A DNA stretch of 64,000 nucleotides from Zootoca vivipara (lineage: Eukaryota). The position numbers and the translations under genes are program-made. Below the pieces are notes generated by a model. That model was not told the DNA's origin. It made no database searches and saw only the letters and a program-made list of their open reading frames with translations. Location: contig NC_083282.1 of assembly GCF_963506605.1 (NCBI RefSeq), forward strand, positions 58,404,001 through 58,468,000. Reading direction: 5' to 3'. Each line of letters begins with the position of its first letter. Within the stretch, counting starts at the first letter, position 1. Positions 14,022 through 57,373 of the stretch are shown in pieces.

Positions 14022-14373
14022 TAGAACACACACATACACACAGAGCGGATTCTAGCACATTAACTTCCACCCTCTGCAAAGCAGAGTTAGGTTAGCGTCT
14101 GTATTCCCAAAATATATATGCCAATTAAATTTTGTGTGCAGTTCTGCTTTACATGGGTTTTATTGCACTTGTCTAGTAACAACTGCTCTCAAAACATTTT
14201 GCAACATCTTCTTCATCACCATGTCTGCACACAGTAAGCCACATGAAGGTTACTGGGAAGGAAACTGCCAACATGATCTGGATCTACCCACACTGGATGT
14301 ATATCCTTCTTCAAGCATTAATGCCCACACAGGAACATTCAATGAGAGAGCTGCATCAGCTGTAATTACCAGG

Positions 14374-14601
14374 TCATAGACTAATAGAGCTATAGCCTTG
14401 GAAGAGACCACAAGGGTCATCAAGTCCAACCCCCTGCAATGCAGGAATCTTTTGGACAACATGTGGCTCGAACCCACAACCCTCATGCATAGCTGCCAAG
14501 TTATCCCTTTTTTAAAGGGATTTTCCATTATGCTGAATAGGCTTCCTCGCGAGAAAAGGGAAAACTTGGCAGCTATGCTCATGCTCTGCCAACTGAGCTA
14601 T
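14374..14601 (-). mobile_element. tRNA-derived SINE with CR1-type 3' tail, interrupted by the 90-bp MITE
   Basis: Minus strand ATAGCTCAGTTGGCAGAGCATGAG [MITE] GGTTGTGGGTTCGAGCC (A and B boxes), then GGGGGTTGGACTTGATGACCCTTGTGGTCTCTTCCAA...CTATGA, which matches the CR1 tail at 5635-5700. Confidence 0.8.
14488..14577. mobile_element. 90-bp MITE, copy 1 (CATAG...CTATG; P-element-like by inference)
   Basis: 24-bp TIR CATAGCTGCCAAGTT(A/T)TCCCTTTT. TSD CTCATG at 14482-14487 / 14578-14583. One difference from copy 3. Confidence 0.9.
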
Positions 14602-14702
14602 GAAGTCAGTAGGCATAGTCTCACTCCCCAATATTTGTAGGGGAGCAATCAAGATGGGAGCATTGTTGGATAGCCCTTGGCCAGGAGAAGTCCTTGAGGC
14701 AC

Positions 14703-14884
14703 TGGGTTGATTCCAACACTTTACATGCAGAGTTCCACTTGCACAAAGGAACTACCTTTTATTCGTTCTGTCCCTGCTCCCATCTGCTCCTGGGGGTGCA
14801 CAGGGACTGCAGGGAAGGGGGATTTTCTGTTGTGCGGGTAGAAGTCTGTTGCACAAGCAGAATGGCAGCGCTGGATACAACCCA
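14703..14884. mobile_element. Old inverted-repeat element
   Basis: TGGGTTGATTCCAAC ... GCTGGATACAACCCA terminal inverted arms. Family unknown. Confidence 0.45.
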
Positions 14885-15307
14885 ATATCAATGTGTTCAT
14901 AATTTATCTGGGCTTCAGAATTTAATGATGGAAAAATAATGGCAGATATTTTTTGATTGGGCTTCAGTTTACTTTCATTTGGAACCCATGGAAATCATTG
15001 TGATATCACATCTATGCATCTTGGCCTAGTTTCTTTTGTCTTGCCCATTTATAATGCACATGTCTTCTGGTTCTGAGATTTGCATACAACTTCTGCTTTT
15101 AGGTCATCTGCATCTCCAAGCAAATAGACTCTACATTTGCATACCACCCACCTACAGGGGTCTTTAGGCATTTTATAAACAAGGGTGAAAATATTCAAAA
15201 GGGGGGGAGGGGTTGGAGCATTTTCAATAAGTCTAACGTTCTCTATGAAGCATACCTCCTGGAAACACCAACAATAAAAGGAAGTCTATCTAATCATTCA
15301 GTATTTG

Positions 15308-15480
15308 CAGTGCTGTTTTCTGGGGGGATGCAGGGGTACGCATACCCCTAAACATTTTGTGAATATTTGTACTTTTGTCCATTTACTATATATTTTTTTC
15401 CCAATTTGAACTATAAAATAGTGATTTTCTTGAGTCAAAATGAGAGTACCCCTAAACATTTTTAAAGAAAAAAAGCACTG
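15308..15480. mobile_element. hAT-type MITE
   Basis: TIR CAGTGCT(G/T)TTTT ... AAAAAGCACTG. Perfect 8-bp TSD AGTATTTG at 15300-15307 / 15481-15488. Confidence 0.85.
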
Positions 15481-15508
15481 AGTATTTGTACTTAGTACCT
15501 AACATTAT

Positions 15509-15584
15509 GAAGACAGGAGTGCCTGGCGTGCTCTGGTCCATGGGGTCACGAAGAGCCGGACACGACTAAACGACTAAACAACAA
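15509..15584 (+). mobile_element. Bov-B 3' end, heavily 5'-truncated (76 bp)
   Basis: Near-identical to the 3' end of the full-length copy. 12-bp TSD ACCTAACATTAT (15497-15508) / ACCTAGCATTAT (15585-15596). Confidence 0.92.
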
Positions 15585-16379
15585 ACCTAGCATTATATAT
15601 GTATTTATGTTCACATAATAAAAAAGGGAGTGTTTTGTAAAAGAGATGTGAAATAAGTCAGTGGAGGCTAACTGCAGTTCAAAAAGAGACTAAAAGTACA
15701 ACAGAAGTGTAGGAAGAATCTGTACGGTAATTTGTGTCTCAAGCAAGAATGCTGGAAGGAGAGAATATTTTTTGCCACCATAGTTCCACTAAGGCCCAGG
15801 CTACCTACAATACTTATTCTCATCAACATTAACAGATTTAGAAAGCGCTCTGCTTGAAAACACATGGATTGTTTCAGAAGACAAAACAGATTCAGAATTA
15901 CTGTGGCAAGAGATCAGCTGAAGTCCCCAATGACTTGTTAATAGCCATCAAATAAGTGTGACTGTTCTGGCATACACTCACACAGGGGATGTAGGCGAGT
16001 ATGGGGAACTAGCAAACACCCAGCTACTAACCCAGAGAGCCACATGAGAAGGATATAATGGTTAATGATATGAAAGTCAGCCAACAGATCCAGGAAACCA
16101 ACAGGGTTTCACTTTCTCTCTGGCTCTCCCCAAAAAAGTCATTCATCAGGGTGACCATGGCTGATTCTGTACTGTGTTTCCTCAAAGTGTGCTTGGAGGA
16201 AATGTATTTCTTTTCCTAAGGAAATGGTATTTGCAACTGGATATTAATTATTGCAGACCTCCAGATCCAGTGGAGGTGTTTGAGTAGTAGTCACATACAC
16301 CCCACATTTAAAAATGTAAAAGTAATACCTCTTCACTGCCACACGATAGGCACAGGAATATGTGTTCTAGCCCATGTTA

Positions 16380-16800
16380 AATCATCTTCATGGTGAGTTT
16401 CATGCCATTTGCTCTCCAACCATTGTCCAATTTACTTCATCATCCAAAGCTCCCTGGAAATCCAGAGGGCACTTTGCACTCTACAATGTCAGAGAGGGCA
16501 CCTGGGAGGGATTCCATCAATGACCCTTCTCATCCCACCATTCCACAGTGAGACCAGAATCTCGACAGAATCCCCAGCTCTACTCAACTCCCGCAAAACA
16601 TTCAGGATACCATCAGCTTCCTTAATTCTCTGGTGATGGACAATCTTAATGCATCTTCCACCCTTACAGGAAGGTAAAGCTGCCACCACTCCAGATCTTA
16701 GCAGAAAATGGTCTGACCTTGTCAACAGGCTTTTAGAGGACCATGCAGCCATTACAAGACTACACTGAGCGGTCTTTCACCATGATAGATCATCACGACT
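16380..16800 (-). mobile_element. L2 ORF2 internal fragment (end of APE domain and linker)
   Basis: Peptide SDHFLL...CKGGRCIKIVH.QRI.EADG.LN.L...AGDSVE.LVSLWN..M.R.ID.IPP.CPL resembles squamate L2 ORF2. Confidence 0.7.
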
Positions 16801-19067
16801 GTGTTCCATATCACTAAACTTTCCAGAAGCTCAGTTAAAGGGAGCTGAGCTCCTCTGGCCCATTGCCTTTAATTACAAAGGCCGATCCATTCACAAGAGA
16901 CCCGCTGTTTCTAAAGTACCATATGTTAGGAAGCAGGGAAGCCCTCCCCCCTGCCTGCGGCTGCCAGAAACCCCTAAGTTCAGTTGTGCTGTTAAAAAAG
17001 GATTAGGACAGGGTATGATTAAACCGGGGAGTTTAAAATGACAAACAAGCCTCTAAATGGGATTAGAGCCTTAATGAAAGCAGTAATGAATGAAAGAAGC
17101 ACCGGAATATTACCCATAAATATCCAACAGATAGATTAGATCCCTGGATACTGCATTAGCAGACTCTATAAAATTATTTCAATTACTCTTCATCGATAAA
17201 TAACAAGGCCATATTCCACGTAGAAGCAAATTCTTCTCTGCTGCTGTTTGGAGCCATTAAAAGAGATGTGGAGTTTTTAAATCTCATGAAAAGTGAGAAA
17301 GAGGCAACACACAGAGATGTTGAGAAATGCTGCAGAATATAACAAATATGTATTAGCAGTGTATATTTTAGAGCATATTCTTGCAGCTGCTTGGTTTCTC
17401 CTATCCTATTTTTGTTAGCATTATAAGGCTGGAGAAATACAATATTTGTTTAATAGAGTTGACGATAGAGGCCGCATTCAGACATGCAGTTTACTGTGTT
17501 AGCTTTACTGGTTATCCCTGCTTGAACAATGGAAATTCACTTTCGGCCTTGGCGCAGAATACCTAAAGGAGCTGCTTGTTCTGCATTCGATCTCACTCCT
17601 AGCATTTATATCAGACCTGGCCAGTCCATTTTATCTGCCAACCAAAGGGGCAGATGCTGGGTGTCTCTATTTCCTACCATGATTGGAGAGAGTTCTTAGA
17701 CCTGCCTGTGCACAGTGTCCTCCAATATTGCTCACCAAGCCGGGGTCAAGCATGGAGACATATGGCAGGCTTTGAGACTCCTAGTTACACGTTCCAGCAT
17801 TCCTGACACAGTACTTCCTTCAGAAAAGTGCAAAAGCAGGCACCTCTATAGAATGCCACTGAAGGAACAGAGGCACCATGAATGAAACTGGGGAAGTGGG
17901 ATGGAAAATGTATATTAACTTCCCACTGTCTCTGATTTTCCCACTCTAGCCAAATGTTCAGGAAGGCAGGAGAGTCACATGAACTATCATTCCTGCAGCT
18001 GAGGGGACAGATGACCTTTCCAATTCAGTACCTTTATAAATCTTAAGTAATGAAACTTATTACAAAAGAAATGAAAAAGCTCAGGTTAAATAATTTTCCA
18101 CAAGAGATTTATGCTCAGAGCTTGGAGCATGCAGACAGAAGGGTGGATCATATAATAGACCTTCCACATTCTTTTTCTTAAAACTACAGTAACTCTTAAA
18201 GCAATGGATGAATGACAGGAGCCCTGGGAACAGCAACTAGTTTGCCAAATCAAGGGGGTGGGTGGGTCAAAGAAGTTAAGCTGTATCTGTCCTCCCCCAC
18301 CCTTCATTATTATGACATGATTAACTCAGCCTTAACAGCAAGAACACACTTTAATATGGTATGTTCCCCACATTCCCAAGCAGTGAGAGGTGTCTGGGGC
18401 AACAGTGTTACCTAGCTTTGGTTTCTTTTGGTTGAAACCATTTTTGTCTTTGTAGAGTTTGCTTGGTTTACAAATGCAGCACAAGTAGAAGCAAACAGCT
18501 TCTACAAGGCAGCAGATCTACCACTGTACTCTGCAGATCCAGAAAGAGATATTCTGCAACCCAAGGTGCATCTCAGTTCAGCCAACACTCTGTTCTCACT
18601 TTGCCCCCATCTATTTGAAATTGATCTGCACATTTCTTTGGGGGAAAGGAGGGTCACCAAGGTTTCAGGAGACCATCTCTCAACAAGAGACATCAATTCA
18701 CCATTCCAGGCTGTTAACCTAACTGGGGGACATTTGGCCAGGAGTGGAAAAATATCGTGTTGTTATGGCAACAACAACATTAGCAGCATCCCATCAAGAC
18801 TTGACTCTTCAAAAATCCCATTCTCTTCTTGAGGTTGGACAGCTCTCACTCGTACAAGCTAGCTAGTCAAGTACATTTAAGCTCCTGGCTTCTCCTTTAT
18901 TCTGCTGCACACAGCAGAGCAAGTACTAGTGTTTGTGGTTTAGAAGTGCCCCAGGGAACTAGGGGAAAGAACATACAAGAAGCCCCCATTAGCCTACTTA
19001 AAAATAGAAACAGCTGTCTGAGCCACAGGAGGTTTGGTCAAGGAGTTCAGCCGTGAGCCAGTCAAAT

Positions 19068-22000
19068 GTTTGTTGTTTAGTCGTTTAGTCGTGTCCGACT
19101 CTTCGTGACCCCATGGACCATAGCACGCCAGGCACTCCTGTCTTCCACTGCCTCCCGTAGTTTGGTCAAACTCATGTTCGTAGCTTCGAGAACACTGTCC
19201 AACCATCTTGTCCTCTGTCGTCCCCTTCTCCTAGTGCCCTCAATCTTTCCCAACATCAGGGTCTTTTCCAAGGATTCTTCTCTTCTCATGAGGTGGCCAA
19301 AGTATTGGAGCCTCAGCTTCACGATCTGTCCTTCCAGGGAGCACTCAGGGCTGATTTCCTTAAGAATGGATAGGTTTGATCTTCTAGCAGTCCATGGGAC
19401 TCTCAAGAGTCTCCTCCAGCACCATAATTCAAAAGCATCAATTCTTCGGCGATCAGCCTTCTTTATGGTCCAGCTCTCACTTCTATACATCACTACTGGG
19501 AAAACCATAGCTTTAACTATACGGACCTTTGTCGGCAAGGTGATGTCTCTGCTTTTTAAGATGCTGTCTAGGTTTGTCATTGCTTTTCTCCCAAGAAGCA
19601 GGCGTCTTTTAATTTCGTGACTGCTGTCACCATCTGCAGTGATCAAGGAGCCCAAGAAAGTAAAATCTCTCACTGCCTCCATTTCTTCCCCTTCTATTTG
19701 CCAGGAGGTGATGGGACCAGTGGCCATGATCTTGGTTTTTTTGATGTTGAGCTTCAGACCATATTTTGCGCTCTCCTCTTTCACCCTCATTAAAAGGTTC
19801 TTTAATTCCTCCTCACTTTCTGCCATCAAGGTTGTGTCATCTGCATATCTGAGGTTGTTGATATTTCTTCCGGCAATCTTAATTCCTGCTTGGGATTCAT
19901 CTAGTCCAGCCTTTCGCATGATGAATTCTGCATATAAGTTAAATAAGCAGGGAGACAATATACAACCTTGTCGTACTCCTTTCCCAATTTTGAACCAATC
20001 CGTTGTTCCATATCCAGTTCTAACTGCAGCTTCTTGTCCCACATAGAGATTTCTCAGGAGACAGATGAGGTGATCAGGCACTCCCATTTCTTTAAGAACT
20101 TGCCATAGTTTGCTGTGGTCGACACAGTCAAAGGCTTTTGCATAGTCAATGAAGCAGAAGTAGACGTTTTTCTGGAACTCTCTAGCTTTCTCCATAATCC
20201 AGCGCATGTTTGCTATTTGGTCTCTGGTTCCTCTGCCCTTTCGAAATCCAGCTTGCACTTCTGGGAGTTCTCGGTCCACATACTGCCTAAGCCTGCCTTG
20301 TAGAATTTTAAGCATAACCTTGCTAGCGTGTGAAATGAGGGCAATTGTGCGGTAGTTGGAGCATTCTTTGGCACTGCCCTTCTTTGGAATTGGGATGTAG
20401 ACTGATCTTCTCCAATCCTCTGGCCATTGCTGAGTTTTCCAAACTTGCTGGCATATTGGGTGTAGCACCTTAACAGCATCATCTTTTAAAATTTTAAATA
20501 GTTCAGCTGGAATATCATCACTTCCACTGGCCTTGTTATTAGCAGTGCTTTCTAAGGCCCATTTGACTTCACTCTCCAAGATGTCTGGCTCAAGGTCAGC
20601 AACCACACTACCTGGGGTGTACGAGACCTCCATATCTTTCTGGTATAATTCCTCTGTGTATTCTTGCCACCTCTTCTTGATGTCTTCTGCTTCTGTTAGG
20701 TCCTTACCACTTTTGTCCTTGATTATGGTAATCTTTGTACGAAATGTTCCTTTCATATCTCCAATTTTCTTGAACAGATCTCTGGTTTTCCCCATTCTAT
20801 TGTTTTCCTCTATTTCTTTGCATTGCTCATTTAAGAAGACCCTCTTGTCTCTCCTTGCTGTTTTTTGGAAATCTGCATTCAGTTTCCTGTATCTTTCCCT
20901 ATCTCCCTTGCATTTTGCTTGCCTCCTCTCCTCCGCTATTTGTAAGGCCTCGTTGGACAGCCATTTTGCTTTCTTGCATTTCCTTTTCCTTGGGATGGTT
21001 TTCGTTGCTGCCTCCTGTATAATGTTACGAGCCTCCATCCATAGTTCTTCAGGCACTCTGTCCACCAAATCTAAATCCTTAAACCTGTTCCTCACTTCCA
21101 CTGTGTATTCATAAGGGATTTGATTCAGATTGTATCTTACTGGCCCAGTGGTTTTTCCTACTTTCTTCAGTTTAAGCTGGAATTTTGCTATAAGAAGCTG
21201 ATGATCTGAGTTACAGTCAGCTCCAGGTCTTGTTTTTGCTGACTGTATAGAGCTTCTCCATCTTTGGCTGCAGAGAATATAATCAATCTGATTTCGATGC
21301 TGCCCATTTGGTGATATCCATGTGTAGAGTCGTCTCTTGTGTTGTTGGAAGAGAGTGTTTGTGATGACCAGCTTGTTCTCTTGACAGAACTCTATTAGCC
21401 TTTGCCCTGCTTCATTTTGAACTCCAAGGCCAAACTTGCCAGTTGTTCCTTTTATCTCTTGATTCCCTACTTTAGCATTCCAATCCCCTGTAATGAGAAG
21501 AACATCCTTCTTTGGTGTCATTTCTAGAAGGTGTTGTAGGTCTTCATAGAATTGGTCAATTTCACTTTCTTCAGCACCGGTAGTTGGTGCATAAACTTGG
21601 ATTACTGTGATGTTAAAAGGTCTGCCTTGGATTCGTATCGAGATCATTCTGTCATTTTTGAGATTGCATCCCATCACAGCTTTTGCCACTCTTTTGTTGA
21701 CTATGAGGGCCACTCCATTTCTTCTACAGGATTCTTGCCCACAGTAGTAGATATGATAGTCACCCGAACTGAATTCACCCATTCCCTTCCATTTTAGTTC
21801 ACTGATGCCCAGGATGTCGATATTTATTCTTGTCATCTCATTTTTGACCACATCCAGCTTACCTCTATTCATGGTTCTTACATTCCAGGTTCCTATGCAA
21901 TATTTTTCTTTACAGCATCGGACTTTCCTTTCGCTTCCAGGCATATCCGCAACTGAGCGTCCTTTCGGCTTTGGCCCAGCCGCTTCATCAGCTCTGAATC

Positions 22001-22288
22001 TACTTGTACTTGTCCTCCGCTCTTCCTCAGTAGCATGTTGGACGCCTTCCGACCTGAGGGGCTCATCTTCCAGCGTCATAACTTTTATATGCCTGTTGTC
22101 TTTGTCCATGGAGTTTTCTTGGCAGGGATACTGGAGTGGCTTGCCAGTTCCTTCTCCAGGTGGATCACGTTTAGTCAAAACTCTCCACTATGACCTGTCC
22201 ATCTTGGGTGGCCCTGCATGGCATAGCTCATAGCTTCTCTGAGTTATTCAAGCCCCTTCGCCACGACAAGGCATTGATCCATGAAGGG
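19068..22288 (-). mobile_element. Full-length Bov-B LINE (RTE clade), 3221 bp
   Basis: Perfect 13-bp TSD GAGCCAGTCAAAT at 19055-19067 and 22289-22301. Bov-B-type 5' end (CCCTTCATGGATCAATGCCTTGTCGTGGCGAAGGGGCTTG...GGAGAAGGAACTGGCAAGCCACTCCAGTATCC). 3' end ...GGGGTCACGAAGAGTCGGACACGACTAAACGACTAAACAACAAAC. Single long ORF. Confidence 0.97.
19077..22109 (-). CDS. Bov-B ORF: AP-endonuclease + reverse transcriptase (1010 aa from first ATG at 22109; track start at 22178 is a TTG)
   Basis: APE motifs GTWNVRT, ILGISE, IQVYAPT, GDWNAK, IDYIL, SDH. RT motifs YRTIALIS, QAGFR, FIDYAKAFD, GVRQGCILSP, YADD. RTE-type basic C-terminus RRRGRQRTRW. No internal stops or frameshifts. Confidence 0.96.
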   Translation of the reverse strand: MDKDNRHIKVMTLEDEPLRSEGVQHATEEERRTSTSRFRADEAAGPKPKGRSVADMPGSERKVRCCKEKYCIGTWNVRTMNRGKLDVVKNEMTRINIDILGISELKWKGMGEFSSGDYHIYYCGQESCRRNGVALIVNKRVAKAVMGCNLKNDRMISIRIQGRPFNITVIQVYAPTTGAEESEIDQFYEDLQHLLEMTPKKDVLLITGDWNAKVGNQEIKGTTGKFGLGVQNEAGQRLIEFCQENKLVITNTLFQQHKRRLYTWISPNGQHRNQIDYILCSQRWRSSIQSAKTRPGADCNSDHQLLIAKFQLKLKKVGKTTGPVRYNLNQIPYEYTVEVRNRFKDLDLVDRVPEELWMEARNIIQEAATKTIPRKRKCKKAKWLSNEALQIAEERRQAKCKGDRERYRKLNADFQKTARRDKRVFLNEQCKEIEENNRMGKTRDLFKKIGDMKGTFRTKITIIKDKSGKDLTEAEDIKKRWQEYTEELYQKDMEVSYTPGSVVADLEPDILESEVKWALESTANNKASGSDDIPAELFKILKDDAVKVLHPICQQVWKTQQWPEDWRRSVYIPIPKKGSAKECSNYRTIALISHASKVMLKILQGRLRQYVDRELPEVQAGFRKGRGTRDQIANMRWIMEKAREFQKNVYFCFIDYAKAFDCVDHSKLWQVLKEMGVPDHLICLLRNLYVGQEAAVRTGYGTTDWFKIGKGVRQGCILSPCLFNLYAEFIMRKAGLDESQAGIKIAGRNINNLRYADDTTLMAESEEELKNLLMRVKEESAKYGLKLNIKKTKIMATGPITSWQIEGEEMEAVRDFTFLGSLITADGDSSHEIKRRLLLGRKAMTNLDSILKSRDITLPTKVRIVKAMVFPVVMYRSESWTIKKADRRRIDAFELWCWRRLLRVPWTARRSNLSILKEISPECSLEGQIVKLRLQYFGHLMRREESLEKTLMLGKIEGTRRRGRQRTRWLDSVLEATNMSLTKLREAVEDRSAWRAMVHGVTKSRTRLND

Positions 22289-25200
22289 GAGCCAGTCAAA
22301 TAAGGTTAGTGTATTGGTCTCACACAGCACACAGTGTTATTGTTTAGATCACTCATTATTTTCTTTTATTAATAGTTTATTGGGGTTTTATTATGAGCAA
22401 ATGTTTTTCTATTTAGAAGAGATACTAATACAACAATACTTTTTGCAAGTTTAAAGGATTATAGGTAAATAGGTTTTGCTTTCTCTTATATTTGATAAAA
22501 ACAACTAGAGGAAAAACTATAACACCTGATATGGACTTTGCAAGTTTGGTCATGTAAGATTTTTGAGAAATCCAATTCCTGAAAGCTTCTCAAACAGAAA
22601 AAATCCATGTATCTCTCTGTCTTGTGTGACTTGTTCAACTGTCAGCCTATGGTTACCTTGAGCCCCAATCAAGAGAAACTGCAATATTTTGCGTGTACCA
22701 AGGAAAACTGTATGAACTAATTCTGCCATAAGGAATGTAGGATATCAAATAATAAATGTTTAAAGTTCAGGAATAAGCATTGATGCTGAAAAGGCTCTAT
22801 TGAATAGACTCTATGAATAGAAACAATACTTTATTTTTTTAATAAAATAATAATATTATTTTGCTATAACTGCTAACTAGGGATTTCCTTGCCATGGGAC
22901 AGAAGTGGCCAAGAATAAGCATAATAATTAGTTGTTGGCAATATGCACAAGCAAAATGTTTAGTACATTGTAAATGCTGTAAAACATGTAACATAATGAA
23001 ATATGTTAAAAGCATAAGTTAAATTGATAAACAGCTCTGTTTCCGAATCCAAATTAAACCAGGGTATGATAAAGATATATTCATTATCTGTAATTTTGTT
23101 TGCAATAATCATTGTGTGTCTGTGTGTGAAATAATTTTGCATGTTTTAAAAACTATTACACATTATCTAATCCTGTTTAATATTTTACCATTAGGAAATA
23201 TCAATACTATAAAACTGAATGTACTATATTACCAAACAGTTTTATTTCAAAATATTCTAGTTAGCTTGAGGTGAAGAAAATATGTTCTCTAAGCGGTAGA
23301 AATAAATTGGTTCATAAAGAACAAGAAAAAAAACCATGTATTAATAGTAAAATCATCATTACTTAATAACCGTTCAATAAAATAGTTAAAACTACTAAAT
23401 CTGACCATGGGAAGAAAAGAGCACATAGGGTGGACCTGCATTCAGTGATGCTGGCTGTTAGCCTCCCGCTGCTGAAAGCGTGATGGGAACTTGACTCTTT
23501 CAGCTAGGCAGGTGGGCAAGAGGTCTTCTACCGTAGGGGAATGCAATGAGGCGTTTATTAAAAACTGTTATAAAAAACATACAGCATCATACTTAACTCT
23601 TATGAATATTAGCAAGCATCGTAACTTGCCAGATGGAGTAAAGATTGCCCGGTGATATTCCTGATGCACTCACCTTACTCTTAAAAAAATCATTCTTTTC
23701 ATTTGAATATACGAGATAACTACTTTAAAATGGCTCTGTGATGGCACCTTACATCTCCCCTATCCTCCTGAAATTTTATCAAAGGGTCAGGGGAACCTAT
23801 CAAATCTTAAGGACTGTAACATTTAGCGTTGCAGTGGAAGGAGGAAACAGCCTAAAACAGGGAATCTTGTGTGTGTAGCGCAATATTCCTCTGTCCAATT
23901 CCAGTCAATTTCTCCCTCTCATAGCAGAGCCCATAATGTTCAAGCAAGTTCTGCTACCCTTTCGATAGTGATTTTTGGGAAGAATGAAGGGAATGAGGAG
24001 GGAAAGGAAATAGCAGTTTTGTTAGCTCCCTTCCACTTTCACAACATTGTATGCAACTGTTGACATTGGGCATGAGCCCCCACTACAATATATGGTTTTA
24101 TTTGTCTCCTGAACACTTTTTAGAAAGCCTATCCAGACATACAATTTAGTTATCTACGTCTGCTTTCAAAGTTTTACTGACTTATTTTTGTGTTTTATTA
24201 TCTTTGGACATGTGGGTTTTTAAAAAAGTTTTGTGGGTTTTAGCTGCGCTTTACCAATGTTTTTATTGTGTGTATCATGTATGACCTTTAAGATTAAGTT
24301 GTCTAGAAATCTTTCTAAATGAATAAAAATATAGAATTACACCAGACAAAAAGCTGCATTTCTCAGGACGCTATGAGGCTTGTTTACACTGGTCAAGCAT
24401 ACCAAAGATCAACAGAACATTAAAATGTGGGAGATATTTGGAGCTTTGTGGCAAGTGATATTGCAACAAAGTACACAATGCTAATATGAATTATGATTAT
24501 TTGAATTTGATTAAACAACCTTGATGGCTTCTGCCATCATCGGCTTCTCTGATAAATATCAAATGATGGTGGAAATCAGAGCAGGAAACAGTATAATTTC
24601 ATTTTTATCACAGCAGCTGATGAAAGGGGAAGCCAAAATGTTTTGCCACATAAATAAAATATTATGATTTGTTAATCACAATAATGTACAGTATTTTAAT
24701 GAATAACTAAATTCTAGCAGGGATCCAGAGCCAGCTTGCAGGAAGATGCTTTTATAACTATATATTATATACATTTATATAAATACGATAAATTATCTGC
24801 CAAACGAAGTAATGACAAATAAAACTAGCATGGTAAAAATAGCCACTAAAAGATGTGGCACAACTGGGAGTGTCAGAAAATGTCCAATAGCCCTATCAAT
24901 AAGTCAGGTATGTAGCTAAGCCTCAAGAGTTTGAAAAGAGGCAATAGGTATAATGTAAAGAAAAACCCCTTCTGTAATAACTGCCTAACTCAGCCAGCAT
25001 CCAGCCTAAGCTCATTCCAGTTCTCTTTTGCTGGTTTTCTTCTCTTCTGTAGACAGCAGGGGCACAGGAAGCAGGGAAGCACTGACTTCCCTCCCTTAAC
25101 CTCCCCTTCAAAGCTGGATGAAAACTCAGTGCTGCAGAGAGGTTTCTCCATAGGACAACCAGCCAGGGATGAGGTTAATAGGCCTGCCCCATGTGTGACC

Positions 25201-50000: not shown

Positions 50001-53000
50001 CATTCCTGCACACATCACTGAAACAGATCCCTTGATAACAATTGAAATTTACTGATAGACAAAATGATGAATGCTACACAAACATATTCGCAAGCGTTCC
50101 CAAAATAGAAAAACTAGCAAGAAAAGTTTAGATTGTTTTTGGAGGATTTCTGGGGATTTGGATTGCTTTTAAAACCCATTTACCATCTTTTCTACACATA
50201 CAGGTATGTCTTGATTCCATCTTTTCTGATGAAAAATACTGGAATTTTTTTTTTGGGGGGGGAAACATGGTAGGAGGACTCACTGGAATCAGTTTTAATA
50301 CAAGGTTTTATATTACAGTCATACGTCACATGCTTTTATTATTGGAAATATTTATTGGCTGACTTCCTGAGCAAAGTACATACAACACAGCTTTAATGAT
50401 GAAAAACATCCATGGTACAACAGCAATACAAAATAAAAATAAAATTTTATTTCTACAAGTATCACAGCACTAAAAGCTATATATTTAGTTATGCATGGTC
50501 TGTAGGTACCTCTCCATTAGCCTCTGAGTTTGTGATGGTGATCTGCTATGCCATGGCCTATGCCCAAGTGGGCAGAAAGCTCTGAAAGGGCTGATGCAGG
50601 GTAATATGCCAGTAGTTTTGGATCCACAAGATCCAAATCCTCAGAAATCCTCCAAGGACCCTGATCCTCCACACACCCCTCCAATCTAAATTGATTACAA
50701 AACAACTACCCACCTCCCTGTCTTCAACTCTGCCTGGAGTAAGGCAGCCAGGCTTGAGATGCAGCTGTGGGTCCGCAACCCCTCAGCCCCACTTAGGTTT
50801 GTTTTGCCCCAACACAAAATGAAAAAGCTACAGAAAATTATAGCTCCTATCTATACTGTAGATTTATGCCACACTCGACTCAAGATACAAAAGGTTGCCA
50901 TCTTCATGAGATGAGTGTACTGTACAGGGCCTTCATTTTTTGTAAATTGCTGCTTGCCTTCTTCTGGTGATTTTGGAGATTCTAGAAGCAAGTACAGTAT
51001 CCTGAATTTGATGTCTTATTGACCTGGCCGCTCCCTTGGGGTTAATCTTCACACCTCTCACCTCCAGTAGCTATGACACAGGCATCTTGGTACAAAGGTA
51101 ACTGTACAATCCAATGCATGTCTACTTTGCGTTCAACGGGCCCCCCCAGGTAAGTGCATATAAGAGAGGTGGGAAACCTCAGGCTAGGGTCCAAATGTAC
51201 CCCTCTTAGCCTCTTCTGTCTTCCCCCAACCCAAATCCCTTATCGGTCCTGTTCCATGTCCTCCTCAACCAGGTGGAATGTCTCCTTGCACTGTGATAAT
51301 GCATCTTGCTTGCCTGGATAGAGAGATGGTTGTAGGCATGTAGAAACCTCTGATGCATGTAACTACTGGAATGTAGCCCACTTTTTGCCACCAGCATGTA
51401 GCCCATAAGGAGTTTTGGTCCTCAGGCTGAAAAAGGCCCCTAGGATTGCAGCCAAGAACAATTATAATTTCAAGGCTGCAATCGTATTTGTGTTTGTTGG
51501 GAAGTAAGAGTCACTATATACAAAGAGGATATTCTTTCTAAGCACACTTCCAGACAATTTCTCTAATTGACCACAGCCATATCCTGTTCCCTGTTCCAAA
51601 CATATAGCAAAATTTCATATTCTTCTTAAGTTGCAAATGAGTCCCCTTTATGTTGTAAATGGAGTGAAATAAGTTCAGGTTTAATAAGAAATAATGTACT
51701 GCATATATTTAATTTTCTCAAAATGTCCTTTAAAAAAAGGGTGTGGTGTAATTCACAATGGCTTCAAAATTTCCAGAAATTTATATCTCTTACTGAAATT
51801 AATGGAAGTTTGTGAAAAAAGCACTGTTCTGTTGATAGTGGGAAATATCACCTTGCACTCTTAATCTTCAGCCCTTATACCAATTAAAACAATTAATGAC
51901 ACATCTCATAACTGCCTGCAATTATGAAACTTTAAACGGATAGAAATGGATGCAATGCTTACAATTCTCCTTAGTACTATTGCATTACAAGGGCAATATA
52001 TTTTCTCCATGCTAGCTTGAGCCCCCCCCCCCATTTTCTTAACTCTGATCAAGTCAACCTTAAAATAGCCTCATTATTTTAGCTTTGTCTGTCTTGCAGT
52101 GTTTGGGTGATCTGAGTTGAGCAGCGGTGTTCAGCAATCACCAATTTTAAATTTGCCTAAATTTAAATGAACTCACATGTGCAAATTCAGACACAACAGC
52201 AGGCTTGGTGAGGAGGCAGCTCCCCCATGGATGAAGTGGCAATCCTGTGTAGATGTTGATTAGTATGCCTAGCTTCACTCAGGAGGGTAAAGAGATACCC
52301 TCCAGCTGTACTGGAATAAATTGCACACCAAACTTTGGTATTGGGTAATGAGCAGAGAACCCATCTATTCCCTCATGTCTTCCCTTTCACAACTTCTTGG
52401 AATGACTCCCCCATAGCAAATGCTAATTACCTGGTCCAATGAAAACTTCCTGGGATTGGCCTGAGGGGATCTATCGCTTTCACAAACCTTGGCAATTTAT
52501 GTAAAGTTTTTTCATGGCAATAAGGTTTCCTTGAACTGAACTATGTATGTAACCTTTCTGTGGCTCTTCTCTGGCTGCAGTTAAAAGAAGAACGCCCCTC
52601 CACCCTTTTAATTCAAATAACCTTCAAGAGTCAATGTTCCCACCTCTTCCATACAGAGTTCACCTGCCTCCCCTAGGCTTGGTGTAAGAAGGTCTATCAT
52701 TTATATAGGCAGGGGCCAGCCTTCCCTCTGCTTTGACTGTCTTGCCCTTCTCCCTGCAACGTGAGGAGAATCTTTAGGGCATGGCATTAATCTTCTCCCA
52801 CCTCCCGCCGAGTGACAGGCGTGAGTGCAGCTCTGTTCATAATATTCTGCATAAGGGTCTCTGAACTACATCAAACCAGTGTAAAAATGTCACATAAGCC
52901 ATGAGAAATCATTTCAGGTGCTCTATTGTTCACTTATTCTCTCTCTCTCTCTCGTTCAAGAATTATTTCCACAGGTGAAGCCAAGGAATGAGAACAACCT

Positions 53001-54184
53001 ATGTTTCCTAAATAAAGCATTAGGCAGGATTTGGGAACAGCAAGGTCCCAGGTTTACAGCACAGCCTTTTTGAGCTACTTGAGCAATGGAAAAGTGCTAT
53101 CTGCAGTGTGAACAAGCCAAGCTCAAAGGATGAAGTGATGTAAAGAGGCTTTATGTGGAAAGGGGGGTTTAGGGTAAGGTATACAGAAGAGGAACTGTGT
53201 GCATAAAAAGTAGTTCTTCAAATGACAAAAGGTGGTGGTGGTGGTGGCGGCAGTGGCAAAAACCACAGCAGAACTAGCATTAACACATGGTCTCCCACAG
53301 TCGCCAGATAAATCCCCAAGTGTCCTGAGAATGAGGCAGAAAGGTTTAAGCCTCTTTCACAGTGGACAAAACCCTCCCAAAAAAGAGAGACAGCACTAGT
53401 ATACTCAGAAGGAAGTCCACGTAATATCAGTGGGATTTGCTTCCCAGTAAGGGGGTTGGGGACCACAGCAGGATGAATCTGCCTCCACTATGTGGGCTGG
53501 TGGCAATCCCTGGACATTTACAAGTGTTCTGCTGTTGTTTTCTCTTTAACCCCTCAAACTGTTGTGTAATCACTGAGCGCGACTCCAGGTGCAACATGCC
53601 CAATTGTGTATCCTCATGGCTCATTAATTTCTGCAGAAGCAAGCAAAAAATAAAAATAAAAATAAATCACTAGCAGAAATAGCAGCAAGGTCCCAGGATT
53701 CAGCGCTGTATTTTCTTTAGAAAGCACACACATAAAAACATGCTAATTGAATTTGGATGTTTTTGAGAAATGCAAGGCAGCTCATGCTGGGAAGCGAGCT
53801 AAAAATGGCTCCTCACAAATTCTCTCAGTGCAGATGTGCCAGTGGGCCTCAGTTTTGCCTGCAACAGTCACTGCAATTTCTAGCTTCACTGACACAGCAT
53901 ATCATCCTATGTCAGCAATCTTCATCCTGAGTTGCAGAATCACCTGCTGCTATTCCACATATGCAAAAGCACAAATGGCTCTGCTTCTCTGTCAGAGACG
54001 ATCTATATCGCATTATTTTAAGTATGGATGCTGTGAAACAACTTTCAAAATAGCACAGATATAAAATGGTACTACATTTTTTCATGTAGCCCTCCAAACC
54101 TGTGCAGGATTCCTAGGGATATGTATAGTGACCACATGTGCAGAAAATACTGTTCCGTAGCCCTCTTCAGGTGTTGCCCCTCAC

Positions 54185-54274
54185 CATAGCTGCCAAGTTA
54201 TCCCTTTTTTAAAGGGATTTTCCCTTATGCTGAATAGGCTTCCTCGCGAGAAAAGGGAAAACTTGGCAGCTATG
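54185..54274. mobile_element. 90-bp MITE, copy 3
   Basis: Same TIRs. 8-bp TSD CCCCTCAC at 54177-54184 / 54275-54282. Confidence 0.9.
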
Positions 54275-55150
54275 CCCCTCACACAATTACCATAATGTGA
54301 CAAGAGTCATGCTGTACTCCTTGCCCCTGTAGAATGCAATGAAATGCACTCATGTGGGAGAAAATAAAAGGGTGCAGTGGAAGTTTAGCCTGTGACCCCA
54401 ACCTCTGAGAATCAACCCTGTCCTATTTGCCTCGCTGCACCTCGCTGCAACTGCATTGTCTTATCCTAGGCGCCAATCATTGTAATTCCAGCACTTGAAA
54501 TTTTTTTGGGAACTGTGCTTGGTTGACAGATAGAGTGCATGGCTTATCCTGACACATTTCAAGCTAAAATTGTTTCTCTTCATGTGATTGATTTAGTATT
54601 ATCTCTTTAACAGTTGGAGAGGCTTGCTCACAGCTCACGTCAAGCAAAGACAATGGCACCAAGTGAGAAAGATCTGCAAGGAAAGAAAGATGCATTTGTT
54701 TGAAAATACACTAAGAGCTCAGGAACTTGGGCCAACCATATCTCCCAGGCATTTTCAGTCCTCTCTCCTCCACATATTGCAATGCTCAATGAGGAAAAGA
54801 CCCTTTCTGTCTCATAGCATGCAAAGTGGCCCATAAGATCAGATCACAAGAGTACGGAGCAGTTGTGTTCAGCTTGTGAGTTAAAAGCAACAAGAGCAAT
54901 TTCTCTTATTAAGGACAATTAGCTTAGAAATAGGATATTTGTTAATCAGATGTGACAAATTATTGACAGACAGATATTACGTTCAATAGACCAAAGCTGA
55001 AAACATTGCAGATTCAGTTTCAAATGCTATACAAAAAGAAAAAAATAGAGATAAAAAGATATATGGTGACCATCAGCAACCTTTGATAACTGCTTAAGGG
55101 CGGTTTCCCAGAGAATAAAGGTCACACCATCAATTTCACCAGCTGATTCC

Positions 55151-55644: not shown

Positions 55645-57134
55645 CTGATTCCTAGTCTGCTCTACTAGTTTTGCAGATACACACACGCATACCACCAAAG
55701 AAAGTCAAGGAATGTAATCTGCTAATAAATAACTTAATAAAACAGAGGGAGGGTCTTTGATTGCAAATGGCAGAATAGAAATCATAGGAAAGAAAGACAT
55801 GGACCATTCTTTTCTCCCTTACATCACAACATGGACAGAACTTCAAAGCCAGTGAAGTACCAGGATATCTCCCTGACAAAACTTGTGAAGGCAAGAAAAC
55901 TTTATTCAGCTTTCTTTGCTGAATTTTTCTTTTTGCAGACTCAAGTGAAGTTTCAAAGTCTCTTCAAAATTTCACATTCGATTCCAGCTGCTTTTGCAGA
56001 TTTAATTTGGTGGTCTTTTTTTATATAAAAAAACTTACCTCTATTTTTGTCCCCAATGAAATAACCCATGCTTTTCCTCTGCTAGTCATTAAAAAGCACT
56101 CTGCACAAAAAATGTTTCACTTCCTTAAGATCTCTGTGAGAAGAGTCTCTCTCTTAACTGGGAACAGTGGTAAAGAAACAATCACGAACAGGTTAACAAC
56201 AAAGGAGACATGTAAAACACTTCACCACTGAGTAAAACACAGTTCTTAATGGAATTGCACTTTAGGTATGTTTCATTATTTAGTAACTCCCCCCAATTCA
56301 CAATTAAGAGAATTAGCAGCTCTGATGAATATTTAGGCCCTCTCACCCCATAACAGATGAGTTGAAGACATCCCTGCTCCATCTCTATTGGGAAACTTCG
56401 TGTGTGGTTCAGTTTCTTTGAATTCTTCCTGCCAAGCTAGAGATAGGGCACCCTTGCAAAAATGATTAGCCAGTTTAAATTTACAATGGGACATTATAGT
56501 TGAGGAAGCACGACTCCTGCACCTCACAGCTGGGTCCAGCTCCATTTGCTGCTTTGACAAAAAATTGAATGGAAGAAGTCATGTTGATCCATTAGAAGAA
56601 AAAGGGGGGGAAATCTAAGTTGCAGTATCATAATACATTTATTAGGAGCAACTGAAGGTCATGAAGTGCTGAGCTAGCTTTTGTGATTCATTGATCTCTT
56701 CCTACAGCTGGATGTTAAACAAACAAAAGGAGGGGAGAAGCAAAAAAGATATTGGTAAAGGGCTTAGAGCACAACCATCCGTAATATGAGTTGTAAGAAG
56801 ATGATGATTCACGAAGCTGTCTGGGGTAAACTGTACTCTGTGTTTATAGCTCCAAGGCAGGGGTGGCTAACTCTTTTCACTTAATCACACAGCAGGATTA
56901 TCATCTCTGATGGCCACGTGTCCTACTTTTCAGAGGACAGTCTTCTGTTTGCAGGCCTGTCAGAGGACAGTCGTCTCATCTGAAGGGTTGTTCAGTCCAT
57001 GTCTTGTTTACAGATAAAGAACTATAGGGTGAGAGGGCATGTTGCACATCAAGAGTCAGCATCTGGGCAGTGCAGATCACCTGGCCACAGTCTTCCCCAC
57101 AATGCGGAGATGCAACATGTTTCTATTTAAATTA

Positions 57135-57373
57135 CAGTGGTACCTCATGTTGCGAATGGGATCCGTTCTGGCAGCCCATTCACAACATGAAAAGGCCGCA
57201 ACATGAAGTGCTGCATCTGCGCACGCGCGTGATGCAATGCGGCACTTCTGTGCATGCGCACAGATAACGGACACGCCGAACCCGGAAGTGACCCGTACCG
57301 GGACTTCCGGGTTCAGTGCATCCGTAACCTGAAACGACGCAACATGAAGTGGACGTATCCTGAGGTATGACTG
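57135..57373. mobile_element. Tigger/pogo-like MITE, CpG-rich
   Basis: TA|CAGTGGTACCTCA ... TGAGGTATGACTG|TA. Three CAACATGAA repeats. Internal IR GAACCCGGAAGT / ACTTCCGGGTTC. Confidence 0.82.

Follow-up and report, generated by a model that had tools for sequence, protein, structure and literature searches.

A homogeneous, high-copy family of 90-bp CATAG...CTATG elements in the lizard Zootoca vivipara and its possible link to P-superfamily transposases

The name MITEs, for miniature inverted-repeat transposable elements, denotes non-coding cut-and-paste DNA transposons that are moved in trans by a transposase encoded elsewhere. Within a 64-kb stretch of the genome of the lizard Zootoca vivipara (contig NC_083282.1, forward-strand positions 58,404,001 to 58,468,000; this whole stretch of 64,000 nucleotides is called the window, and coordinates count from its first base), three near-identical 90-bp elements with CATAG...CTATG ends are almost certainly MITEs. 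Raw reads put the family to which they belong at approximately 2.5 x 10^4 copies per haploid genome, equivalent to one copy per roughly 58 kb and to ~0.15% of the genome. The weak step is the assignment of the mobilizing enzyme, which, judged from the element ends and target sites, may be a P-superfamily (THAP9/Pdre-like) transposase, a suggestion that falls a little short of an even chance but is the best of those considered. The wider proposal, that about 25,000 near-identical MITE copies in an amniote were moved by a P-superfamily transposase and that a P/THAP9-like enzyme was working in lacertids until recently, is put forward still more tentatively. Mobile P-type transposases are known from flies, mosquitoes, and zebrafish, whereas the only form known from amniotes is the single-copy gene THAP9, for which no natural DNA substrate is known. 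A literature search with the end sequence returned only primer matches in unrelated papers, and no paper describing the 90-bp family was found. The copy number, the exact ends, the target site duplication (TSD) of the family, the target motif, the subfamilies, and the presence of the family in other organisms are new here.

The three copies, their flanking repeats, and the tRNA-derived short interspersed element (SINE) that one of them interrupts are located as follows.

14488-14577, plus strand: MITE copy 1, 90 bp, with a C>A variant at element base 40 that is common to 11% of the family
14482-14487: left flanking direct repeat of copy 1, CTCATG (6 bp)
14578-14583: right flanking direct repeat of copy 1, CTCATG (6 bp)
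14373-14610 (approximate limits), minus strand: tRNA-derived SINE, split by copy 1 inside its tRNA-like head
34050-34139, plus strand: MITE copy 2, 90 bp, with a single G>A difference at element base 54, one of the rarer changes in the family
34044-34049: left flanking direct repeat of copy 2, CAATTC (6 bp)
34140-34145: right flanking direct repeat of copy 2, CAATTC (6 bp)
54185-54274, plus strand: MITE copy 3, 90 bp, carrying the majority base of the family wherever a variable site is listed
54177-54184: left TSD of copy 3, CCCCTCAC (8 bp)
54275-54282: right TSD of copy 3, CCCCTCAC (8 bp)

The initial annotation of this DNA had reported three 90-mers on the same strand with at most two pairwise differences, each bearing a 24-bp terminal inverted repeat (TIR) and a TSD of its own. 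This description is borne out at 14488, 34050, and 54185, with one mismatch within the TIR and flanking repeats of 6, 6, and 8 bp. Copies 1 and 2 each depart from copy 3 at a single position, element base 40 and base 54, respectively, and all three copies lie within zero to one change of the family consensus. The direct repeats of the three copies are mutually unrelated, as are their wider flanks, and the copies therefore represent three independent insertions. At copy 1, the SINE at 14373-14610 becomes continuous once the MITE and one of the two repeats are taken out. The split SINE carries the widespread core ...GGGTTGTGGGTTCGAGCC...GATTCCTGCATTGCAGGGGGTTGGACT...; a second SINE of that tRNA-derived type, which could have helped to settle the TSD of copy 1, was not found in the window, and ARAGORN detected no intact tRNA.

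The ends of the element are fixed at CATAG...CTATG. When the first 24 bases are compared with the last 24, a single mismatch is seen at position 16, and the first 15 bases pair perfectly. This perfect 15-mer end has six exact occurrences in the window, which are the six ends of the three copies, and the 40-base interior occurs three times against an expectation of 0. With up to three mismatches allowed, the 15-mer end gives 11 matches against 2.5 expected; the extra matches inspected at 25600-25860 (25677/25763) and at 30600-30800 (30701) were read as chance. The motif AAGGGA/TCCCTT is present four times in alternating orientation (element bases 17-22, 28-33, 37-42, and 69-74), as had been annotated, and the third occurrence is mutated in copy 1. 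These four subterminal repeats are likely to serve as transposase-binding sites, a putative role. The CpG-containing CTCGCGAG is unchanged in all three copies, and the earlier observation that CpGs are kept extends to most copies of the family. Folding of the element as single-stranded DNA yields a hairpin with an energy of -27.3 kcal/mol and a z of -8.2.

Two reading frames run open through the element, and a protein search revealed no protein of 55-175 amino acids that shares words with it. A search of the full protein library returned a single sequence, a 784-amino-acid repetitive predicted product on a 236-kb ENA contig (P0121), which contains six stretches that are ~44% identical to the plus-frame peptide of the MITE. 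The shared residues, SCQ...L.RLP...RK.LAA, correspond to the parts encoded by the inverted ends. This product may stem from related elements arrayed in tandem in a different organism, or the match may be a chance one to low-complexity sequence. The 24-base end pattern had no match in metagenome or viral contigs.

Family size was estimated by comparing 900 bases around copy 3 with raw reads of two other individuals (X20 and X21), at ~1.5 Gb of reads each. For a genome that we take to be ~1.45 Gb in size, this amounts to roughly 1x coverage. Reads matched in similar numbers in the two individuals (31,353 and 30,530), with a depth of 0-2 over the unique flanks and of 25,600-26,300 over the element. 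The read counts and the depth lead to the same copy number estimate. The boundaries of this pile-up are sharp: ~11,500 reads per individual end at 54185 and again at 54274. The high copy number proposed in the initial annotation is thus matched by a ~25,000-fold pile-up on exactly the 90 bases of the element. At such a density, three copies in 64 kb are only a mild local excess (Poisson P ~0.1). In a few X20 and X21 reads, the end of one copy is joined to the start of the next, with 0-35 bases between them, or two copies meet head to head, which shows that tandem or nested pairs of copies exist at other places in the genome.

The family is homogeneous and lies near one consensus, with a few subfamily variants. 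Of the matching reads, 71% are at least 95% identical to copy 3 (15% at 99% or more, and 56% at 95-99%). Variants occur at element bases 9 (7%), 16 (21%), 27 (39%), 28 (15%), 34 and 35 (35% each), 40 (11%), 62 (11%), 63 (21%), and 82 (13.5%). These are the higher-frequency sites among those listed, only about 10 positions at which more than ~7% of reads vary, with at least 13 more entries beside them. The two CpGs are altered in just 11% and 21% of reads. Homogeneity with few subfamilies fits a recent burst rather than an old family, and we infer that amplification was recent on an evolutionary scale. Together, TIRs at fixed ends, copy-specific TSDs, and a short, non-coding, high-copy, and homogeneous sequence define the 90-bp element as a MITE.

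The family extends beyond the sequenced animal. Single reads in both X20 and X21 span the unique flank into copy 3, and the copy 3 insertion is probably shared by three animals; a read skipping copy 3, as expected of an empty allele, was not seen in either individual at ~1x coverage, which is too low to exclude one. Contigs of two other organisms (B and D), compared with the same 900 bases around copy 3, contain 79 and 65 element bases, respectively, at 100% identity, followed by unrelated flanks. Since both carry identical stretches, the family is not confined to one species. Four sampled words of the 90-mer are also present in runs of the source organism and of six other organisms. The insertions had been described earlier as independent and young. 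Their independence is upheld by the unrelated flanks, whereas their youth holds only in part and in a relative sense, given that copy 3 probably occurs in other individuals and that other organisms share stretches of the element.

The flanking repeats in the window are not uniform in length (6, 6, and 8 bp). For copies 1 and 2, a repeat of 7 bp is an equally good reading, since a C follows the right repeat and the element itself starts with C. The TSD of the family was read from the consensus of clipped read ends in both individuals. In each of them, the consensus before the element is ...ATG(A/T)CTTA(G/T)(A/G)AG, and the consensus behind it is GTT(A/T)GAACTCAT..., with TCAT as its outer part. 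The T-T-A/W and A-A signals of the two sides align when the duplication is 8 bp long, and not when it is 6, 7, or 9 bp. The outer ATGA and TCAT are reverse complements of each other; beyond these, the consensus is no longer common to the two individuals and shows nothing but A/T background. The G at positions -1 and +1 is partly an artefact, in that C-bearing reads match the copy 3 flank, extend by one base, and are listed at 54184 or 54275. Target positions 1 and 8 are for this reason best read as S. The family thus duplicates 8 bp inside its target, a weak palindrome of 16 bp (ATGA-STTWKAAS-TCAT) in which the cuts are staggered by 8 bp. Repeated host sequence was considered as a source of this consensus and rejected, as the window shows no enrichment of the 16-bp pattern.

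Because the TSD is 8 bp long, hAT and P are the main candidate superfamilies. Tc1/mariner, PIF/Harbinger, and piggyBac/Kolobok are excluded, since the 6-8 bp flanking repeats lack a TA, TWA, or TTAA duplication. The P superfamily has TSDs of 8 bp (7-9 bp across the superfamily), a length shown by the family consensus and by copy 3, with 6 (or 7) bp in copies 1 and 2; the 7-8 bp that the initial annotation cites for P-superfamily TSDs agree with the family consensus. P elements start with CAT and end with ATG, as does the lizard element; Pdre2 opens with CATACC. The likeness to zebrafish P TIRs suggested in the initial annotation proved real: the TIR of Pdre2 (CATACCTGTCAAC) and that of the lizard element (CATAGCTGCCAAG) are identical at 10 of 13 positions. 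A match of this quality has a probability of ~1e-4 for random sequence and of ~1e-3 given a CA start. With the variant that 7% of reads have at element base 9 and 13.5% at base 82, the match would be 11 of 13.

Target choice provides a second line of comparison. In Drosophila, the P target is ATR-GTCCGGAC-WAT, with the motif ATRGTCCGGACWAT, and the CAT ends have been linked with the target flanks (PMC2577343). The layout of the lizard target parallels this arrangement: S-T....A-S lies in the duplication, and the outer flanks, of AT type, resemble the CAT/ATG ends of the element. MITEs derived from P elements and flanked by 8-bp TSDs have been described in Anopheles and in Drosophila (PMC3698922), and THAP9 genes are present in lizards. 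Under a P-type mechanism, a transposase encoded elsewhere would act in trans on the CATAG...CTATG ends, possibly using the AAGGGA/TCCCTT subterminal repeats as its binding sites, and would cut the target with an 8-bp stagger in the weak 16-bp palindrome. Its source might be a still-mobile P element or a resident THAP9 gene acting on the element ends.

Several observations weigh against a P-type enzyme. An autonomous element with these ends was not seen in the window, leaving no transposase tied to the family; neither the 15-base end, the 40-base interior, nor a scan for elements that combine a mismatch-free 10-bp TIR with a mismatch-free flanking repeat of at least 6 bp recovered any longer element with the family ends in the 64 kb. 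In the literature searched, mobile P-type elements are not reported from any amniote. Of the local copies, two have flanking repeats of 6 rather than 8 bp, and among P insertions in Drosophila just ~2% depart from a length of 8 bp (PMC3698922). The repeat of the Drosophila P element matches the lizard TIR at only 4 of 13 positions. Five Anolis hAT TIRs are identical to the lizard TIR at 7 of 12-13 positions, and because unrelated TIRs already share 7 of 13, the 10 of 13 positions shared with Pdre2 are only moderately informative. Finally, the argument from a match to the THAP-binding consensus, offered earlier in support of a P-type origin, is best dropped. TNNGGGNW occurs 250 times in the window, so that ~0.35 matches are expected per 90 bp; the single match per element is at chance level, and 11% of family copies, copy 1 included, are without it. 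A THAP site would not be diagnostic in any case, because the motif selected for zfTHAP9 by SELEX (systematic evolution of ligands by exponential enrichment) is absent even from Pdre2.

Two further points of this kind are those that speak for a hAT-superfamily MITE with atypical ends, moved by a hAT transposase recently active in lacertids. The 8-bp family TSD (consensus S-T-T-W-K-A-A-S) carries T and A at positions 2 and 7, respectively, which is the hAT pattern seen as nTnnnnAn in Hermes and as NNTNNANN and NTCTAGAN in Anolis hAT MITEs (PMC3014272). Moreover, hAT MITEs are abundant in lizards (PMC3014272); they are the commonest DNA elements there, and hAT is the commonest source of lizard MITEs with 8-bp TSDs. 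The subterminal repeats have a counterpart as well, in that the BED domain of Hermes binds short subterminal repeats just inside its 17-bp TIR. However, the T2/A7 pattern is also found in the Drosophila P target GTCCGGAC and is therefore non-discriminating (PMC2577343). The element ends point away from hAT: hAT termini follow the rule YARNG, which all 37 Anolis hAT families obey (PMC3014272), whereas position 3 of CATAG is T and not a purine. The lower TIR identity to the five Anolis hAT families (7 of 12-13) than to Pdre2 (10 of 13) points in the same direction. A hAT origin is, on this evidence, rather unlikely, though it survives better than the other competing explanations.

Mobilization by another or an undescribed superfamily with variable TSDs (6-8 bp), in which the likeness to P ends would be convergent, is less probable again. 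It would accommodate local TSDs of 6, 6, and 8 bp, a variation that is normal in neither P nor hAT, as well as the lack of a transposase linked to the family and the tendency of TIRs of unrelated families to share many bases. Against this stands the flank consensus of the whole family, which fits 8 bp. To our knowledge, the other superfamilies with TSDs of at least 8 bp (Merlin, Mutator, Zisupton, and Novosib) have ends unlike those of the lizard family, and we know of no CAT ends among those with 6-bp TSDs (Polinton, IS3EU, and Dada). Zisupton has been reported, among vertebrates, from teleosts only. An immobile element, whether a structured-RNA gene in dispersed copies, a unit of a satellite, or an artefact of the assembly, would explain the strong hairpin fold and the few reads joining copies head to tail or head to head, but it is scarcely credible and in practice refuted by copy-specific duplications within unrelated flanks, by the SINE cleanly split by copy 1, and by the pile-up in independent raw-read libraries of ~25,000 dispersed copies with sharp common ends and diverse flanks; Rfam, moreover, gave no family match anywhere in the window.

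If the enzyme is of the P type, the family would offer a candidate natural amniote substrate for THAP9-type enzymes and, at 90 bp, a simple substrate for excision assays. Even if derived from hAT, these elements make up ~0.15% of the genome and are a source of insertion polymorphism and of hairpin-forming DNA within genes, and they could provide a marker system for lacertid population genetics. The family also illustrates how raw reads alone can reveal a target preference.

Other features of the window are of a different nature. The scan for TIRs with flanking repeats returned, besides this family, one candidate of 781 bp at 44841-45621, bounded by inverted repeats of 10 bp (TTTCCTTTCC) and direct repeats of 6 bp (TGAACA); it is probably a chance match, as the inverted repeat stops at the 10-bp seed. 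Copies 1 and 2 are 14.4 kb and 4.96 kb away, respectively, from an assembly gap at 28957-29091, which touches no element or TSD and affects only the certainty of the 19,562-bp spacing between these copies. The sequence on the left of the gap (28736-28956) belongs to a repeat with a second occurrence, 70% identical, at 57133-57192, and the gap may lie within that repeat. A full-length Bov-B/RTE open frame of 1036 amino acids occupies 19080-22187 on the minus strand. Its identity is 94% to a Podarcis muralis cluster of 178 members and 99% to a partial protein of Zootoca vivipara, and its close relatives have endonuclease and reverse-transcriptase Pfam domains. Many additional matches at ~79-80% are labelled bacterial, Babesia, or fluke, and probably reflect contamination of those assemblies with ruminant or host DNA.

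Known transposon systems resemble the lizard family in different respects. Pdre2 and the internally deleted Pdre derivatives of zebrafish, which belong to the P superfamily and are moved by zfTHAP9, are likewise vertebrate elements. Pdre2 shares with the lizard family a CATA start, 10 of 13 TIR positions, and an 8-bp TSD, and in both systems inverted repeats lie inside the ends and non-autonomous copies exist. In contrast, Pdre comprises ~50 long elements with 13-bp TIRs and distant 12-bp subterminal repeats, as opposed to ~25,000 copies of 90 bp with 24-bp TIRs. No transposase gene linked to the lizard family was seen.

The P-MITEs of Anopheles gambiae and BuT5 of the Drosophila repleta group are, like the lizard elements, short, non-coding, and recently amplified. 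They share only their ends with a P element, and their TSDs measure 8 bp (8-9 bp in BuT5). Unlike the lizard family, they reside in insects and are tied to identified autonomous P elements, and BuT5 reaches ~1 kb. The hAT-N MITEs of Anolis carolinensis provide a squamate comparison, with an 8-bp T...A TSD, short TIRs, low divergence, and thousands of copies (PMC3014272). All of these end in YARNG (CAG.., CAR..), whereas the lizard family ends in CATAG. In number, the ~25,000 copies of the lizard family alone equal the entire non-autonomous hAT complement reported for Anolis (PMC3014272).

The P element of Drosophila melanogaster differs in its 31-bp TIRs, which match the lizard element at only 4 of 13 positions. 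Its target core is GC-rich, while that of the lizard family is AT-rich, and the outer flank signal of the lizard family is placed one base further out. Nevertheless, both have CAT...ATG termini and duplicate 8 bp on insertion, and the target of each is a palindrome in which S-T....A-S lies inside the TSD and AT-type outer flanks echo the element's own ends (PMC2577343).

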